64,000 nucleotides of DNA from sequence record PP456879.1; one strand, written 5' to 3'. Positions 2,015 to 49,287 of the stretch are shown piece by piece (position 1 is the stretch's first letter; every line of letters starts with the position of its first letter). The notes beneath the pieces were generated by a model. The model saw nothing but the letters and a program-made list of their open reading frames with translations. It was not told the origin of the DNA and did not search any database. A program made the translations under genes and the position numbers.

Positions 2015-3256
2015 CTATTTAGTTAAGCGGTAGGCTCTTACAAATAAGTCATTATTTAATAGACTTTCTAAAGTATCTTCTAATTCAGTAGCCCGTTTAT
2101 CTTTACGACGCTGGGGACTAAGGAAATCTAAAATTTTATCAAAAATGGTCCACTCATTAGCTAAATCATTTATCAATGAATCAATTACTTTAATGTCATC
2201 ATCAATTCCTGGTTTTAGTGATGAGTCCTTTACCCATTTAAGTTGTGCTACTAGATCTTGTTTAATTTTCATTAAACGTTGTCGTTGTTTGTCATAACGT
2301 GAACTAATTGGATCATATCCAACTTTTAAATTACCGGCAATGATACCTAGTGTAACAGGTAAACCAATGATCATAAATAGACCTTTGAATACCTCAGCAG
2401 TAATATGGCTAGAAACAGATTTATATTCACGGTCATTATAATACCGACCTGATTTAGTTAATGCCGTTGCCAGTGGCCTTCCATAACCTAATCGAGTGGC
2501 GAATAAATCAGCTAATTGTTCATCGCGTTTACGTGATTGAACATCACCAGTTAAATGCGGACGTTGCGCTTTCTTAAATGATGATAGAATGACTTTACGA
2601 ATATTTCCTTCAGTCCTATCATTAGCAAACTTCTCATAATCGGCTGGATCAACGTTTTTCTTTAACCATGTTTCATCCAATAATTGAATCTTATACTTAT
2701 TAGCTTTCCTACCCTGTAAGATAAGTATACCTTCAGTAAGTGCATAGTTAAGATAGACGTAGTCACCCATTGTAGCCAGTGTTTCCCAACAATGCCCAAT
2801 TTCATGTAATGTAATGGCAGTAGCTTCTGCTATACTAACACGGTTAATAGCCGATAATAAACCAATAGATAAACCGACCTTGTATTTAAAAGTTGAAACA
2901 GCCTCACCCGTAACTTTTAAATTTGTTAAATCAATATTAATGAATGTATTGACACCTTGCTCAGTTGCTAAAGTAACTCGATTAATATTGTCAAATTTAC
3001 TACCAGTATGTCCAACTGTAAAGGATGTGTATGCACCACCCATTATACCCTGATCATCCAGGTGTGTAAACTCTATATTCATATTGAGGATCTTAGAAAC
3101 ATCATCACTCAGTGACCTAAAATCATTAATATCTATTCTCTGTTGATTATCTAATTTATCACGAATCTTGGTTAGATGTTCTTCGATCAATGGACCTAAG
3201 TCACGCTTAACATTCACATCTAACACTTCATTAGAGATTTCTATCGTATGTAGCAT
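2015..3256 (-). CDS. Zincin-like metallopeptidase-domain virion protein (gp84-like)
   Basis: HEIGH (HExxH) plus downstream EQLADLFATRLGYG motif. Confidence 0.7.
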   Translation of the reverse strand: MLHTIEISNEVLDVNVKRDLGPLIEEHLTKIRDKLDNQQRIDINDFRSLSDDVSKILNMNIEFTHLDDQGIMGGAYTSFTVGHTGSKFDNINRVTLATEQGVNTFINIDLTNLKVTGEAVSTFKYKVGLSIGLLSAINRVSIAEATAITLHEIGHCWETLATMGDYVYLNYALTEGILILQGRKANKYKIQLLDETWLKKNVDPADYEKFANDRTEGNIRKVILSSFKKAQRPHLTGDVQSRKRDEQLADLFATRLGYGRPLATALTKSGRYYNDREYKSVSSHITAEVFKGLFMIIGLPVTLGIIAGNLKVGYDPISSRYDKQRQRLMKIKQDLVAQLKWVKDSSLKPGIDDDIKVIDSLINDLANEWTIFDKILDFLSPQRRKDKRATELEDTLESLLNNDLFVRAYRLTK

Positions 3257-7362: not shown

Positions 7363-8783
7363 TACATACCAGCTTTCTGCCGGAAGAAGTGTAGAACGAG
7401 TTGCCGCTTACCTTCAGGGATGAAACGTGCAAGATAGTTAATATCTACCTGATAAAGCGCATCTGATACATCACTAGTAAATAGGCAGAATAGAGTAAGA
7501 AGATTAATGTGTGCTTCTTGACGGTTATTCTGAGTAGGTAGAGTAGCAACAAAGCGAAGTGCGTTAGATTCACTAAATAGAGTATTACGATTTTTCTTAA
7601 CGAAATCAAAGATAATATCCATGCCTGATTTAAAGCCTTCAATATCTTCGATTGTCATTACGTAGTTGAATACATCATCTAGTTTCTTTTGTGCATCGCC
7701 ACCACGTTCGATAGTGATATAGTCACCAGGTTTAGCACCAGTGGCAAACTGCTCTAGACGAGATTCGATAAATACTTGGTTCATTTTGGTCATACCTTTA
7801 CGAAGTACAGGTTCATTAGATGTTGATTCACTATTCAAGATTTTAACTTCCCCGGTTGGTTTAATATCATCTTTACCAGAGAATACTTTCCATTGTTCAA
7901 CAATAGTTTCAATATCTTGACTAGTGGTAGGTAAGAATAAACGATCGCGTAACTCAATAGCAATTTTAAAATCTTTTATCAGATTACTATTTTTAATAAG
8001 TCCTTCAGCCCAGTCTTCAAGCTCTGCTGTCGTCCAATCGGTAGGTGGAGCATTATCACGAATAACACTATTAACCCAACTACCACGTAGTGTTTTTGGT
8101 GGAGTAATACCTTGTTTAACAAAATCAACCACTTCTTGGGTAGACCAATCTAGTGGAATATCACTAGTGTGAATACGCAGTTGCTTGACTAATTCTTCAA
8201 GCTTGATACTGTCTTCAGTATTGCGAATATCTTGTTTCAGAGTATCTTCATTAACTACCGGTACAATTACTTCCTCAGTAGTCTCATTCTCTTTAGCCCT
8301 TTTAGTTAAAATATCATCAGCAATATCGGCAATATCATTAACTACACCAGTTAGACGATGGTTAGCAGCATCGATTAGTTCATCATCTGACCATTCATCA
8401 TAAGGACGATATTTACGGGTTGGGTCAAATACAAAGCTACCGAGTTCAGTTTTACCTTTAGCAATGCCATCATTGGTAAACCATTCAATGACGTTTTCAT
8501 CTGTCCATGTTTCAGGAATATCATGGTCAGTACGCAGTGCATTTACATTAACTTTAGCTAATTCTGAGGTATCGTTAACTGTATTAACTGAAGAATTAAT
8601 ATCATCTGCTGTAGCATATACTTCCTCAGGAGATACTAATTCAATATTTGTTAATCCTCGACCAATTTCAGAAGTTGGCTTATCTTCAGTTACTTCTGAT
8701 AAAACTTCGTCTTTGACAATAGGTTTTTCAGGTAAACGATTGAGTTGAGGAAACTTTCCAAATCGTTGATTCTTTTTAGACAT
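7362..8783 (-). CDS. Conserved hypothetical protein with internal repeat (gp81-like)
   Basis: 473 aa; SD AAGGA; duplicated DIP..W...V..F...KT..GS.V...W...EL unit. Confidence 0.8.
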   Translation of the reverse strand: MSKKNQRFGKFPQLNRLPEKPIVKDEVLSEVTEDKPTSEIGRGLTNIELVSPEEVYATADDINSSVNTVNDTSELAKVNVNALRTDHDIPETWTDENVIEWFTNDGIAKGKTELGSFVFDPTRKYRPYDEWSDDELIDAANHRLTGVVNDIADIADDILTKRAKENETTEEVIVPVVNEDTLKQDIRNTEDSIKLEELVKQLRIHTSDIPLDWSTQEVVDFVKQGITPPKTLRGSWVNSVIRDNAPPTDWTTAELEDWAEGLIKNSNLIKDFKIAIELRDRLFLPTTSQDIETIVEQWKVFSGKDDIKPTGEVKILNSESTSNEPVLRKGMTKMNQVFIESRLEQFATGAKPGDYITIERGGDAQKKLDDVFNYVMTIEDIEGFKSGMDIIFDFVKKNRNTLFSESNALRFVATLPTQNNRQEAHINLLTLFCLFTSDVSDALYQVDINYLARFIPEGKRQLVLHFFRQKAGM

Positions 8784-8845
8784 TACTAGTTCCTTTCGGG
8801 TTATAATCTAAATAATGGAGAAGCTGAGTAACTTCTCCATCTATT

Positions 8846-11210: not shown

Positions 11211-11705
11211 ATGTCAAATAAAGCTAAAGAACCAACTCTAACTAAAGAACAGGAAAAGACTCTACGTCTATTTGAACGTGCAGTTGGAGCATCAGCTGCC
11301 GCAGCTGATCATATTCTTAACCGTGATGGTTGGGATGTTGTCAATGTACTAGCAGGTTCCGTAGGTAAACGTATTCTACAAACTGAAGTATTCATTAATC
11401 CAGTTATCAATAAGATCAATGAAATCATTCCGACGTTATCTGATCCTACTGGATTCCAAAAGAACCTACAAACAGTTATTGCTGACCTTAATCGACTAAC
11501 TAAAATTATCAGTGTCCTATATGCACAACATCAAGGTAAGGCTGGTCCAGCAAATAATGAAGATGAACTAAAACTCATCAGTGAACTTGTTACTAAATAC
11601 ACTGGTATTGAAGGTGCTATTGAACGCGGTATTGATGGTGTAATCCTAGCGATGATCGGCACTCTTCGAGAAGCTGGTTGGGACGAAAAACTAATTCAAC
11701 AATAA
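11211..11705 (+). CDS. Hypothetical protein (gp78-like)
   Basis: 164 aa, SD GGAG, first gene of a + strand operon. Confidence 0.8.
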   Translation: MSNKAKEPTLTKEQEKTLRLFERAVGASAAAADHILNRDGWDVVNVLAGSVGKRILQTEVFINPVINKINEIIPTLSDPTGFQKNLQTVIADLNRLTKIISVLYAQHQGKAGPANNEDELKLISELVTKYTGIEGAIERGIDGVILAMIGTLREAGWDEKLIQQ

Positions 11706-11716
11706 TGGAGTTTTAA

Positions 11717-13318
11717 ATGGCTACTGCTGACTTCGATAATGAGTACGATGATACTCCAGAAGAGAATTTACTAGATCAAATTGATGAGATCAATGCGCAA
11801 CACGATCCTGACTCTAGTATTGAAAATAATGACGAGGTGGAAACTCCACCTTTCGTTCCTGATCAAAAAGAAATTAAACTACGTATTCCACGTAATGCTA
11901 AAACTGGAAATATCCGGGATGCTTCTGAACCGGCTATTAAAGATAGTGCTAGCATTCTTACTTTACTACGTGAGAATCCCCAGACTGTTTATAATTTCCT
12001 GGATCACAATAAAGAACTATTTAAAGCATTTGCTGATAATAAAGTAGATGACACTAGTGACGGTGTAAAGTGGACAGCTGCTATTCTGGAAGGCTTAGCT
12101 CACTCTATTGTTGAAGATGCACCAATCGGTGCAACTGCCCGAGAAGGTTCTGAATGGTCTAGTGAAATTCCTTATGGTGAAAAGATCATTCGACCTGGCC
12201 GACCTGTATTTAATACCAATGGTCGTAAAATGACCGATGATGAAACTCTAGTTTTCCTAACACGTAAAGCTAACATCGGTACGCCATATGATACTTTCCT
12301 ACCTCATTCAGGTATTTGGGTAAAACTACGTGCACCTACTGGTACTGAAGTAGCTGCCCTACAAGCACGTCTAGCACAATTAAAGATCCGGCTAGGCGCT
12401 GAATCAAAAGGTATGCTGTTCTCAAACATGGCAGCTGTGTTACTTAACATGGTTAGTAGTTTAGCACTTGCATGTGTTATTCAATCCAACTATAAGTTCA
12501 ACACCCCAACTGATCTAGAGCATGTTATCTCAGTAGCTGATGAGCCGTTCTTGCATCACGCACTAGCGGCGACTATGTATCCAGATGGATTTAATTATAG
12601 TTATCCATGCATTGCAGATGCCAATACATGTAACCATATTGAAACAGCGAAACTTAATATGTCAACGCTTGTTCAATATGATCTACTGGCATTCTCAGAA
12701 GAACAAAAGAAATATATTGCACGTAAGTTTAATGCATGTACTGAATCTGATCTTAAGACTTATAAAGAAGGATTCCGTATTGAAACTCAAGTAACTGAAA
12801 TGTTTGGTGACGTTGGTGTTGTTCTTGAGATGTGTACAATTGCTGATCGCCGAGAGTCTGGTGATAGTTGGATTAACTCAATTATCGATATGACTCAAGG
12901 TAGTTTTAATGAACCAGTCGATGGTCCGCAACGTTCTCAGTATATTGCACGTTTACAAAAGATCTCTATTGCCCGTCAGTTCTCACATTTTGTTAAAGAA
13001 ATTAAAGTACGTGAAGATGACGATGGTGAAAGTTCTGAAGACAATATTCGTACTGCAACCACTAATCGTGAAACTATTGAAAAGTTCTTAACTAATATTC
13101 TATCCACACCGGAATATAATGACCGCTTTATTAATGCGGTGAGTAACTTCATTGATTCACAACTAATTGGAATGATTGCAATTACAAGTTGGAATTGTCC
13201 AGTATGTGAGTCACCTGCTGCTACTAAATTTAAAGAACGTTTCCCACACTTAATCCCTATTGACATGCTGTCAACTTTTTTTACTTTGGCGGCCTCGAAG
13301 TCAAACCGGATGGTGTAG
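11717..13318 (+). CDS. T4 gp26-like baseplate hub/tail assembly chaperone (gp77-like)
   Basis: TPYDTFLPHSGIWVKLRAPT..E, C...C pair, C-terminal CPVC and DMLSTFF resemble the T4 gp26 family; SD GGAG. Confidence 0.65.
   Translation: MATADFDNEYDDTPEENLLDQIDEINAQHDPDSSIENNDEVETPPFVPDQKEIKLRIPRNAKTGNIRDASEPAIKDSASILTLLRENPQTVYNFLDHNKELFKAFADNKVDDTSDGVKWTAAILEGLAHSIVEDAPIGATAREGSEWSSEIPYGEKIIRPGRPVFNTNGRKMTDDETLVFLTRKANIGTPYDTFLPHSGIWVKLRAPTGTEVAALQARLAQLKIRLGAESKGMLFSNMAAVLLNMVSSLALACVIQSNYKFNTPTDLEHVISVADEPFLHHALAATMYPDGFNYSYPCIADANTCNHIETAKLNMSTLVQYDLLAFSEEQKKYIARKFNACTESDLKTYKEGFRIETQVTEMFGDVGVVLEMCTIADRRESGDSWINSIIDMTQGSFNEPVDGPQRSQYIARLQKISIARQFSHFVKEIKVREDDDGESSEDNIRTATTNRETIEKFLTNILSTPEYNDRFINAVSNFIDSQLIGMIAITSWNCPVCESPAATKFKERFPHLIPIDMLSTFFTLAASKSNRMV
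13276..13282 (+). promoter_or_regulatory. -1 programmed ribosomal frameshift slippery site T-TTT-TTT
   Basis: ACT TTT TTT in X-XXY-YYZ phase; the -1 frame is closed by TGA at 13261 and open 13264-13779. Confidence 0.7.
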
Positions 13319-13779
13319 TTAATGATCTGAGATATAGTCGTCTTGAGGCCACTTTCAAGGAAGATAGTGGTCACATCCTACATCCAAACTTTGGTTATGA
13401 TAAGTTAACTGAAGATGATACACACTTAGATAGACTATTATCGACAGTAGGGGCAGTAAGACCGTCTACAGCAGCACGTTTAACAAGAGAAGCATATCTA
13501 CTTGATTACGATATCGGTTCACCAGAAAACGGACCCATGTGGTTAAATAAGGTAAATCCTAAAGAGGACTTTATCGAAGGTGGGTTGAGAAGGAGACTGA
13601 CTAGAGATTTCTTCAAGTATAAAGTAGGTAGCTTATCTAATATGTCATTAACTGAATTCTTTGAATTAGCTTATTCTGAGGTAGAATACATAATTGAATT
13701 ATGTAGGAATATTACTCATAATGAGGCTGTTAATAACAATAACCAGTTAAATGAATTAAACAAGCCGTTAACTAAATAA
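13276..13779 (+). CDS. -1 frameshift extension of the chaperone (predicted 687-aa fusion; the ORF-track 80-aa ORF is its tail)
   Basis: 91 stop-free codons without ATG/GTG/TTG precede ATG 13537; tail SLTEFFELAYSEVEYIIEL resembles GT/gp51-type tails. Confidence 0.7.
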   Translation, partial: FFYFGGLEVKPDGVVNDLRYSRLEATFKEDSGHILHPNFGYDKLTEDDTHLDRLLSTVGAVRPSTAARLTREAYLLDYDIGSPENGPMWLNKVNPKEDFIEGGLRRRLTRDFFKYKVGSLSNMSLTEFFELAYSEVEYIIELCRNITHNEAVNNNNQLNELNKPLTK

Positions 13780-13794
13780 AAAAAATAAAGACAG

Positions 13795-13823
13795 GCCCCT
13801 CTCCACATGGAGAGGGGTTTATG
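13795..13823. terminator. Bidirectional terminator
   Basis: CCCCTCTCC-acat-GGAGAGGGG with A-tract upstream and ttt downstream, convergent genes. Confidence 0.8.
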
Positions 13824-48458: not shown

Positions 48459-49268
<810 letters not shown>

Positions 49269-49287
49269 AAAAAAAATAAAAAAAAGA

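Follow-up and report, generated by a model that had tools for sequence, protein, structure and literature searches.

Programmed -1 frameshifting is used by several bacterial and phage genes to obtain two proteins from a single coding region. The tail assembly chaperones (TACs) G/GT of phage lambda and E/E+E' of phage P2 share a conserved -1 frameshift (Xu, Hendrix and Duda, 2004). In these systems the shift occurs near the 3' end of the upstream ORF, frame 0 stops soon after, the shifted product carries an extra C-terminal domain and shares its N-terminus with the short product, and the arrangement is conserved although the sequences diverge; P2, additionally, uses a U-rich site. In E. coli dnaX (tau/gamma), a -1 shift on a homopolymeric heptamer inside a non-structural gene gives two isoforms in a set ratio, the shifted product being the shorter one, and the shift is stimulated by an upstream Shine-Dalgarno-like element and a downstream hairpin. 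In the orfA/orfAB transposases of the IS3 family, a -1 shift on a homopolymer-rich heptamer, usually A-rich with a downstream structure, fuses a downstream -1 ORF that has no start codon of its own. Two products are also obtained from T4 gene 26 (26 and 26'), encoding a baseplate-hub assembly protein, though these share the C-terminus through an internal start and not through a frameshift.

Here we describe a locus of phiKZ-like giant phages that resembles the lambda and P2 systems in expression logic only. PHIKZ077, one of the roughly 70 core genes of nucleus-forming phages (Chimalliviridae core gene cg18, listed as "hypothetical protein" in PMC10299810), very probably yields products of 533 and about 687 residues because the reading frame slips back one base on a run of T's. 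As in dnaX, a -1 shift on a homopolymeric heptamer would give two isoforms, yet here the shift gives the longer product and neither type of stimulatory element was found; as in IS3 elements, the downstream -1 ORF lacks a start of its own, though the proteins and the biological setting are different.

Layout of the PHIKZ077 locus

The window, the whole 64,000-nucleotide stretch analysed (from record PP456879.1), derives from a phiKZ-type phage. Direct reading of the sequence, listing of its ORFs and translation of both frames confirmed that the observation made in the earlier note is real. A T7 run lies at 13276-13282, as the note had claimed, in phase with frame 0 as X XXY YYZ (T TTT TTT). The -1 frame is closed by a TGA just before 13264 and is then open for 171 codons, with its first ATG/GTG/TTG at codon index 91 from the opening, 85 codons after the run. 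The predicted product sizes given in the note are likewise right (522 + 165 residues for the long form). Two details required correction: the 533-aa ORF does not end at the T-run but continues for 11 more codons, and the annotated downstream ORF is PHIKZ076.4 and not gp76, which lies on the other strand. None of 20,000 shuffles of the 516-nt stretch was stop-free, though the decisive evidence is comparative; within the window, the statistic of open frames beyond a stop does not discriminate, as adjacent genes often give long off-frame runs. The features of the locus are collected in Table 1.

Table 1. Features of the PHIKZ077 locus, in coordinates of the window.
Position	Strand	Feature	Supporting observations
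11211..11705	+	PHIKZ078 homolog (164 aa)	Directly upstream of the frameshifted gene in all 19 GenBank phages sampled; phrog_14050, unknown function
11717..13318	+	Frame-0 ORF, 533 aa, PHIKZ077 homolog (cg18); the short product	phrog_4585 (E 7e-196); GGAG Shine-Dalgarno 6 nt upstream of the start; four nearly invariant cysteines; last ~16 residues modelled as a helix
13264..13318	+	55-nt zone in which frame 0 and frame -1 are both open; holds the T7 run, the proposed slip site	T5-T9 run at the equivalent place in every relative examined
13264..13779	+	-1 frame open stretch (171 codons plus TAA); the 165 codons after the run would form the C-terminal extension of the long product (about 687 aa)	Protein-level homology in 21 distant phage records and in an alignment; phrog_12109; AF2 model of about 40 disordered residues followed by a helical domain
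13537..13779	+	Annotated 80-aa ORF (PHIKZ076.4), read here as the tail of the extension and not as a gene of its own	Only a 3-nt GGA, 3 nt upstream of its ATG; first start codon at unrelated positions in relatives
13796..13817	.	G+C-rich hairpin (9 pairs) flanked by T-rich tails on both strands; terminator-like site closing the gp78-gp77-extension unit against the convergent genes	Consensus scan only

Conservation among relatives

The earlier note had staked its reading on relatives retaining both the run and an open -1 frame, and examination of about 97 relatives came out in its favour. The layout is conserved far beyond chance. Specifically, all 18 divergent GenBank relatives with an intact extension, among them a Bacillus phage, have the downstream reading frame in -1 (by chance each would be so about 1 time in 3), a T5-T8 run near the 3' end of the gp77 homolog, and 154-176 codons after the run. 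One GenBank phage, RVTF4, carries one further frame change inside its extension. In IMG/VR, the -1 frame stays open after a T5-T9 run in 79 of 79 evaluable loci: for 150-188 codons counted from the run in 75 loci, and for 178-221 codons counted from the opening of the frame in the other four. All 79 extensions match one profile (E 1e-13 to 1e-67), while none of the 75 tested matches in +1. These counts are not phylogenetically independent, and the GenBank sample was drawn from roughly 226 records with a homolog. The relatives include lineages sharing only 20-40% protein identity, and 47 independently sequenced phiKZ-type records keep both pieces at 99% identity or more.

The site itself is somewhat less uniform. 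Runs of T7 or longer, which contain the X XXY YYZ heptamer, occur in 10 of 19 GenBank genomes and 61 of 79 IMG/VR loci (T8-T9 in 28, T7 in 33), while the remainder, 9 of 19 and 18 of 79 respectively, have T5-T6 (N TTT TTY or a T5). In the Pseudomonas-phage clade the base preceding the run varies (T, A, G) and the run can be as short as T5, and in four IMG/VR loci the T5 is in a different phase; the canonical pattern is therefore not kept everywhere. The run is held at synonymous sites against codon preference: the first Phe codon of the site is TTT in 19/19 genes, compared to 120 of 385 Phe codons (31%) elsewhere in the same genes and, in Xoo-sp14 (63% GC), 0 of 14 elsewhere.

Coding constraint upstream of any start codon

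In 20 of the 21 distant records, RVTF4 being the exception, tblastn homology begins at residue 1-6 of the -1 stretch, and before any ATG differences between close sequences fall mostly on third codon positions of the -1 frame (positions 1/2/3: 1/0/6 and 1/2/8 in two close pairs). The first start codon lies 8-87 codons after the run in the GenBank set and 2-151 in the IMG/VR set. Eleven of 18 annotated downstream starts have no Shine-Dalgarno match at all and only 2 reach 4 nt, while 18 of 18 starts of gp77 homologs have 4-5 nt at a spacing of 6-10 nt. No fusion of the two parts in a single frame was found among 1.84 billion representative proteins, where all 38 hits of the extension are 45-175 aa and all 20 hits of the N-part are 485-633 aa. 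No terminator-like site lies between the run and the stop of the extension, consistent with one transcription unit. Within the overlap, frame 0 encodes the terminal helix (Leu524 is invariant in 21 sequences), while the -1 reading encodes a low-confidence linker.

In contrast to these findings, no convincing stimulatory RNA structure was detected. In the window, the region downstream of the run gave z = -0.84, the consensus fold of 11 relatives has an energy of -1.3 kcal/mol with 4 pairs, the mean z over 18 sequences is -0.79, with 2 below -2, and a search of Rfam returned no match. Many bacterial sites work without such an element, such that its absence lowers the expected efficiency and not the claim itself.

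Interpretation and alternative explanations

Taken together, we hold with considerable confidence that PHIKZ077 is a recoded gene. In this view, most ribosomes read frame 0 through the T-run and stop 11 codons later, giving a 533-aa protein whose last residues form a conserved helix, while a fraction of translation shifts to the -1 frame on the run and continues for 165 codons, giving a protein of about 687 aa with the same first 522 residues, in which the terminal helix is replaced by a flexible linker of about 40 residues and a helical domain of about 120 residues. The predicted masses of the two forms are near 60 and 78 kDa. The most likely mechanism would be -1 ribosomal slippage of tRNA-Phe on the U-run. 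What the analysis demonstrates is the sequence layout, its conservation and the coding constraint on the -1 frame upstream of any start codon; that the shift takes place, with what efficiency and by which machine, is inferred, as no proteomic, ribosome-profiling or transcript data were examined and there is no direct evidence of the long product. Nor did a search of the literature find a paper describing the frameshift or functional data on phiKZ gp77, the "gp77" of the papers found being that of other phages' numbering (the Goslar capsid decorator, a PhiPA3 RNA polymerase subunit and the PCH45 small terminase).

The main rival, which we consider unlikely, is transcriptional slippage, in which the phage or host RNA polymerase adds one U while copying the run and ordinary translation of a fraction of the mRNAs makes the same long protein. 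Runs of T7 to T9, as found in 61 of the 79 IMG/VR loci, are of a length that makes RNA polymerases slip, as in Thermus dnaX, IS elements and Shigella mxiE; no structure stimulating ribosomal shifting was found; and these phages use unusual multisubunit RNA polymerases whose slippage behaviour is not known to us. However, runs of T5-T6 are short for polymerase slippage. The cases studied have about 8-9 or more, and the T7 of the window, within a T5-T9 spread across relatives, leaves this point undecided. The phase of the run relative to frame 0 is kept in 75 of 79 loci, but that could follow from the conserved Phe-Phe alone.

Very unlikely, in our judgement, is that the extension is a separate gene translated from the annotated ATG, from a non-canonical start or by re-initiation after the frame-0 stop, the -1 relation being a by-product of tight packing. 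All public annotations treat the locus in this way, and downstream genes in an overlapping frame are common in the window. Yet homology and third-position bias extend up to 85 codons upstream of any ATG/GTG/TTG, start positions are scattered and mostly lack a Shine-Dalgarno, and packing alone would neither fix the frame at -1 in about 97 of 97 loci nor hold a T-run against codon preference. Finally, homopolymers are a classic source of indel errors, and RVTF4 does carry a further frame change, but a sequencing or assembly error, or a gene inactivated by a frameshift mutation, is refuted by the recurrence of the same geometry in the 47 phiKZ-type genomes and in divergent lineages, and by purifying selection on both parts.

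If the frameshift is real, every annotation of this family is wrong at this locus, the records showing either a short ORF with an arbitrary start or spurious opposite-strand ORFs. In addition, a conserved domain of about 120 residues gains a context as the C-terminus of a core protein, and the ratio of the two isoforms becomes a measurable and probably regulated quantity. The recoding field, for its part, gains a deeply conserved phage frameshift that lies outside the tail-chaperone genes, appears to lack a stimulatory structure and is kept across hosts from Pseudomonas to Bacillus. The locus also offers gene callers a clean test case, in phages that are now a main model of phage cell biology and are used in therapy cocktails.

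Relation to tail and baseplate assembly proteins

The interpretation given in the earlier note is partly supported. A hidden -1 frameshift giving two products with a common N-terminus, and the reading of the 80-aa ORF as only the tail of the long form, are supported by the data above, the products themselves being inferred. That the gene is a lambda G/GT-type tail assembly chaperone is not supported. It is not next to tail tube or tape-measure genes and does not lie between them; rather, its neighbours are PHIKZ078, the head protein PHIKZ079, RNA polymerase subunits, a helicase and a DNA polymerase, and the same holds in relatives. The short form is 4-5 times larger than a TAC (roughly 100-150 aa). 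No Pfam family, and hence no TAC family, is matched above threshold, the PHROGs hit are of unknown function, and sequence searches of both pieces against Pfam, PHROGs and the PDB gave no function. A PDB fold search with a confident model of the N-part (pTM 0.81) gave nothing better than E 2.9, and among the predicted structures of BFVD one mycobacteriophage "tail assembly chaperone" model appears only at E 2.4. No evidence exists that the protein binds tail proteins.

The function of the protein is not established. Our leading, and tentative, guess is a non-virion assembly factor with a weak fold-level link to the T4 gp26/gp51 baseplate-hub assembly proteins (Pfam PF12322, T4_baseplate), which leaves a tail-assembly role possible but unproven. 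Foldseek matched the AF2 model of the 533-aa part to seven BFVD models named baseplate hub assembly protein, subunit or chaperone (E 2e-4 to 9e-3, target TM 0.51-0.57, query TM 0.26-0.32); this compares one predicted structure with others, no solved structure of the family having come up, and does not settle whether the fold is shared. Homology at the sequence level is not supported: T4 gp26 and gp51 score 216 and 178 bits against PF12322, while none of 11 members of the PHIKZ077 family matches at E up to 1, and hhalign comparison of an alignment of the family with a gp51/gp26 alignment gave a probability of only 24% over 22 columns around a CxxC, single-sequence runs giving 1.6% and 4.3%. The PHIKZ077 protein is, moreover, twice as long.

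A bolder possibility, which the data do not rule out but which we regard as unlikely, is that cg18 with its extension is the tail or baseplate-hub assembly chaperone of phiKZ-like phages, an enlarged relative of T4 gp26/gp51. The logic of a short and a C-terminally extended form seen in lambda G/GT and P2 E/E' would then extend to the hub-assembly proteins of large contractile-tail phages, and would suggest what T4 gp26/gp51 do. Alternatively, the two isoforms may act in a process specific to the phage nucleus, with the extension serving as a targeting or docking module. A BFVD fold search of the extension returned only its own uncharacterised family, and the wider neighbourhood in Bacillus phage AgentSmith is mosaic and does not settle the function. 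Both the PHIKZ077 and the gp26/gp51 families have four conserved cysteines, and some depositors already label homologs of PHIKZ077 "putative baseplate hub assembly protein".

Genomic Context and Arrangement of the Two Reading Frames

A 3.5-kb stretch around the locus is 100% identical to Pseudomonas phage KEN51 and 95-100% identical to 46 other phiKZ-type records. In the phiKZ reference the two ORFs concerned are PHIKZ077 (533 aa) and PHIKZ076.4 (80 aa), while PHIKZ076 itself lies further on, on the other strand. The neighbors on either side consist of PHIKZ078 (164 aa, same strand, directly upstream) and the head protein PHIKZ079; RNA polymerase subunits, a virion structural protein and a DNA polymerase; and four small opposite-strand ORFs, the helicase PHIKZ075 and more RNA polymerase subunits. 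This is not a tail module.

Direct reading of the sequence, listing of its ORFs, and translation of both frames bear out the observation made in the earlier note in nearly every detail. Specifically, a T7 run phased as X XXY YYZ lies inside the 55 nt where both frames are open, and the -1 frame, shut by a TGA just before this zone, then stays open for 171 codons; the predicted products are 533 aa and 522 + 165 = 687 aa in length. Two small corrections are required: frame 0 does not end at the run, as had been described, but continues 11 codons beyond it, and the downstream ORF is gp076.4 rather than gp76. In the KEN51 record, the "gap" between PHIKZ077 and the terminator is filled with two tiny opposite-strand ORFs (36 and 30 aa) and the plus-strand ORF is omitted; the two lie inside the conserved -1 extension and are almost certainly spurious.

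Coordinates of features in the window and in the phage records compared with it
Sequence	Coordinates	Strand	Feature
Window	11717-13318	+	Frame-0 ORF, PHIKZ077 homolog, 533 aa
Window	13264-13318	+	55 nt in which both frames are open; contains the T7 run
Window	13264-13779	+	-1 frame open stretch, 171 codons, to the TAA ending at 13779
Window	13537	+	ATG, first ATG/GTG/TTG in the -1 frame
Window	13500-13810	-	Region holding the two tiny ORFs annotated in KEN51
KEN51 locus as retrieved	8507-8617 and 8717-8809	-	The two tiny ORFs (36 and 30 aa)
Window	13796-13817		Perfect 9-bp G+C-rich hairpin with T-rich tails on both strands
Window	49267-49285		A10 run and A8 run separated by one base
Erwinia phage Deimos-Minion locus	2532-3080		Annotated downstream ORF gp272
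Bacillus phage AgentSmith locus	1-30000		Region with the gp79-gp78-gp77-extension block
T4 (NC_000866)	7803-9229		Genes of gp26 and gp51

Conservation Among Related Phages

Homologs lacking the T-run, or carrying stops in the -1 frame, had been named in the earlier note as grounds for rejecting a frameshift, and relatives were examined for both. When the phage collection was searched with the -1 stretch alone, never joined to frame 0, tblastn identified it in 21 records outside the phiKZ species at 34-41% identity. In 20 of these the alignment starts at residue 1-6, up to 85 codons upstream of the first start codon of the window, and in 20 of the 21 the match also spans two annotated genes. 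Pseudomonas phage RVTF4 (PQ015378.1) is the exception on both counts, as its match covers only residues 55-146 and lies under one gene. Ten of these loci were retrieved, followed by eight much more distant ones found with the 533-aa protein at 20-29% identity, namely those of Xanthomonas Xoo-sp14, Erwinia pEa_SNUABM_54 and Deimos-Minion, Ralstonia RSF1, Serratia PCH45, Salmonella SPN3US, Klebsiella FBKp24, and Bacillus phage AgentSmith.

In all 18 relatives with an intact extension, the downstream frame is -1 relative to the gp77 homolog, a run of five to eight T's sits near the 3' end of that homolog, frame 0 stops 8-44 codons after the run, and the -1 frame continues for 154-176 codons. RVTF4 has the run and the -1 opening but carries one further frame change within its extension, such that the C-terminal part lies in a third frame and is annotated as a separate 106-aa ORF; whether this reflects a sequencing error or a real defect was not pursued. 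The position of the first start codon in the extension varies from 8 to 87 codons after the run. In Deimos-Minion the annotated downstream ORF (gp272) was started at an ATG upstream of the T-run, so that it overlaps gp273 by 136 nt, showing how arbitrarily gene callers place the start of the extension. AgentSmith, a phage of about 200 kb with a Gram-positive host, carries the gp79-gp78-gp77-extension block with the same T7 run; whether it encodes chimallin was not checked, and its block sits beside genes annotated as central spike, UvsX and T4-like DNA polymerase.

A wider scan of IMG/VR with an alignment of the family returned 80 loci, one of which runs off its contig. Of the other 79, 75 have an in-phase TTT TTN (run lengths: T7 in 33, T8 in 24, T6 in 12, T9 in 4, and T5 in 2) and 4 have a T5 one codon position over. 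A few of these loci are the same phages as in the GenBank set, for example PhiPA3, 201phi2-1, Phabio and Noxifer. In all 79 the -1 frame goes on for about 150-190 codons after the run and its translation matches a profile built from the GenBank extensions (E 1e-13 to 1e-67), while none of the 75 loci tested matches in the +1 frame.

Coding Constraint on the Extension and on the T-Run

No single-frame version exists in the data searched. A HMMER search of 1.84 billion representative proteins with the 171-residue -1 stretch gave 38 hits, all of which are 45-175 aa long and each of which begins wherever a gene caller found a start, while the 533-aa part found 20 proteins of 485-633 aa. Were these two domains of an ordinary protein, or two ordinary genes, some lineage would be expected to have fused or separated them; none has.

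Several findings indicate that the extension is coding upstream of any start and is not a gene of its own. An alignment of 18 extensions shows residue conservation from the first codons in the Pseudomonas-phage clade. Codon-level conservation ahead of the first ATG had been proposed in advance as a test of the frameshift, and in pairs of close relatives the differences between the frame-0 stop and the first ATG do fall mainly on third positions of the -1 frame: counts for positions 1/2/3 are 1/0/6, 1/2/8 and, in more distant pairs, 7/6/13, the same pattern as downstream of the ATG. Additionally, every one of the 18 gp77-homolog starts has a 4-5-nt Shine-Dalgarno at 6-10 nt, whereas of the 18 annotated downstream starts 11 have none, 5 have three bases and 2 have four.

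The run itself is selected at the nucleotide level. Elsewhere in the 19 genes Phe is encoded by TTT in 120 of 385 codons (31%), while at the site the first Phe codon is TTT in 19 of 19, including Xoo-sp14 (63% G+C), which uses TTT 0 of 14 times elsewhere, and RVTF4 (1 of 20 elsewhere). The nominal probability is 10^-11, though the lineages are not independent. Across species, the stretch where both frames are open shrinks to about 40 nt around the run: the -1 frame opens four codons before the run in the window, Psa21, D6 and Phabio, and frame 0 closes eight codons after it in 201phi2-1 and Viktualia. The run is the only conserved slippery element in that stretch.

Predicted Structures and the Sharing of the Overlap

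The AF2 model of the 533-aa part is confident (mean pLDDT 78.5, pTM 0.81) and ends in a helix comprising residues 517-532. Leu524, two codons after the run, is invariant in 21 sequences, and Phe521 and Phe522 are nearly so. The short form therefore has a conserved C-terminal helix of its own. The AF2 model of the extension (pLDDT 80) has about 40 low-confidence residues followed by a helical domain with a long, very confident terminal helix. The -1 reading of the overlap thus falls in a tolerant linker, which is the usual way in which two frames coexist.

Possible Mechanisms of Recoding

A shift of -1 on a U-run by tRNA-Phe is the simplest reading, and it fits the canonical heptamer present in the window and in most relatives. 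In those relatives that have A or G before the run, or only T5, the P-site tRNA would re-pair with a first-position mismatch, or only one tRNA would slip; non-canonical sites of that kind exist. No conserved stimulatory structure was found: the downstream 118 nt of the window fold no better than shuffles (z = -0.84), the consensus fold of 11 relatives consists of 4 pairs at -1.3 kcal/mol, mean z over 18 sequences is -0.79 with two below -2, and a search of Rfam returned nothing. Slippage of the polymerase on the same run would yield the same proteins, a possibility favored by the T8-T9 runs of many relatives and weighed against by the T5-T6 runs of others. Ribosomal slippage is judged considerably more likely than its transcriptional counterpart. 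The window holds fourteen A or T runs of 7 or more in all, the longest being the A10 and A8 runs listed in the table; whether any other lies in phase at a gene end was not examined. A terminator-like hairpin follows the stop of the extension and none precedes it, and the extension therefore lies on the same transcript. This hairpin lies between the convergent plus- and minus-strand gene sets and looks like a bidirectional terminator.

Identity of the Protein and Comparison with Known Systems

The supplement of PMC10299810 lists phiKZ gp077 as core gene cg18, "hypothetical protein." Searches of Pfam gave nothing, PHROGs places the parts in phrog_4585/8054 and phrog_12109, all of unknown function, and PDB sequence and fold searches were empty. 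Four cysteines (298, 305, 494, 497; Cx6C ... CxxC) are nearly invariant across 21 family members, suggesting a zinc-binding site. In the 201phi2-1 record gp138 is noted as found by mass spectrometry while gp136 and gp135 carry no such note, which is weak evidence that the protein is not in the virion.

The one functional lead comes from a Foldseek comparison against BFVD in which, beyond its own family (E 1e-26 to 1e-16), the model matches predicted structures named baseplate hub assembly protein, subunit or chaperone (E 2e-4 to 4e-3, target TM 0.51-0.57). T4 gp26 and gp51 both match Pfam PF12322, at 216 and 178 bits, and so are paralogs. Profile-profile comparison of the two families, however, gives only 24% probability over a CxxC stretch; membership is therefore not shown and the likeness remains a lead. 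The T4 gp51/gp26 alignment also has four invariant cysteines, but in a different arrangement (CxxC ... CC).

Taken together, the layout is confirmed by the sequence, and the recoding interpretation is strongly supported by comparative evidence though not yet seen at the protein level. The interpretation offered in the earlier note is thus supported in part, as its further proposal of a lambda G/GT-type tail chaperone is not supported. Programmed -1 recoding is already familiar, and what appears to be new is its presence in a gene family where it had not been noticed; full-text literature searches, in which most subscription journals were not represented, found no paper reporting this frameshift, and prior description is therefore not excluded. 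The expression logic is that of lambda G/GT and P2 E/E+E', but the family tests for a tail assembly chaperone fail on genomic position, size, domain and fold. Against dnaX the polarity is reversed, because here the shift gives the longer form. T4 gene 26 also makes two products, with an annotated internal product, 26', but does so through an internal start.
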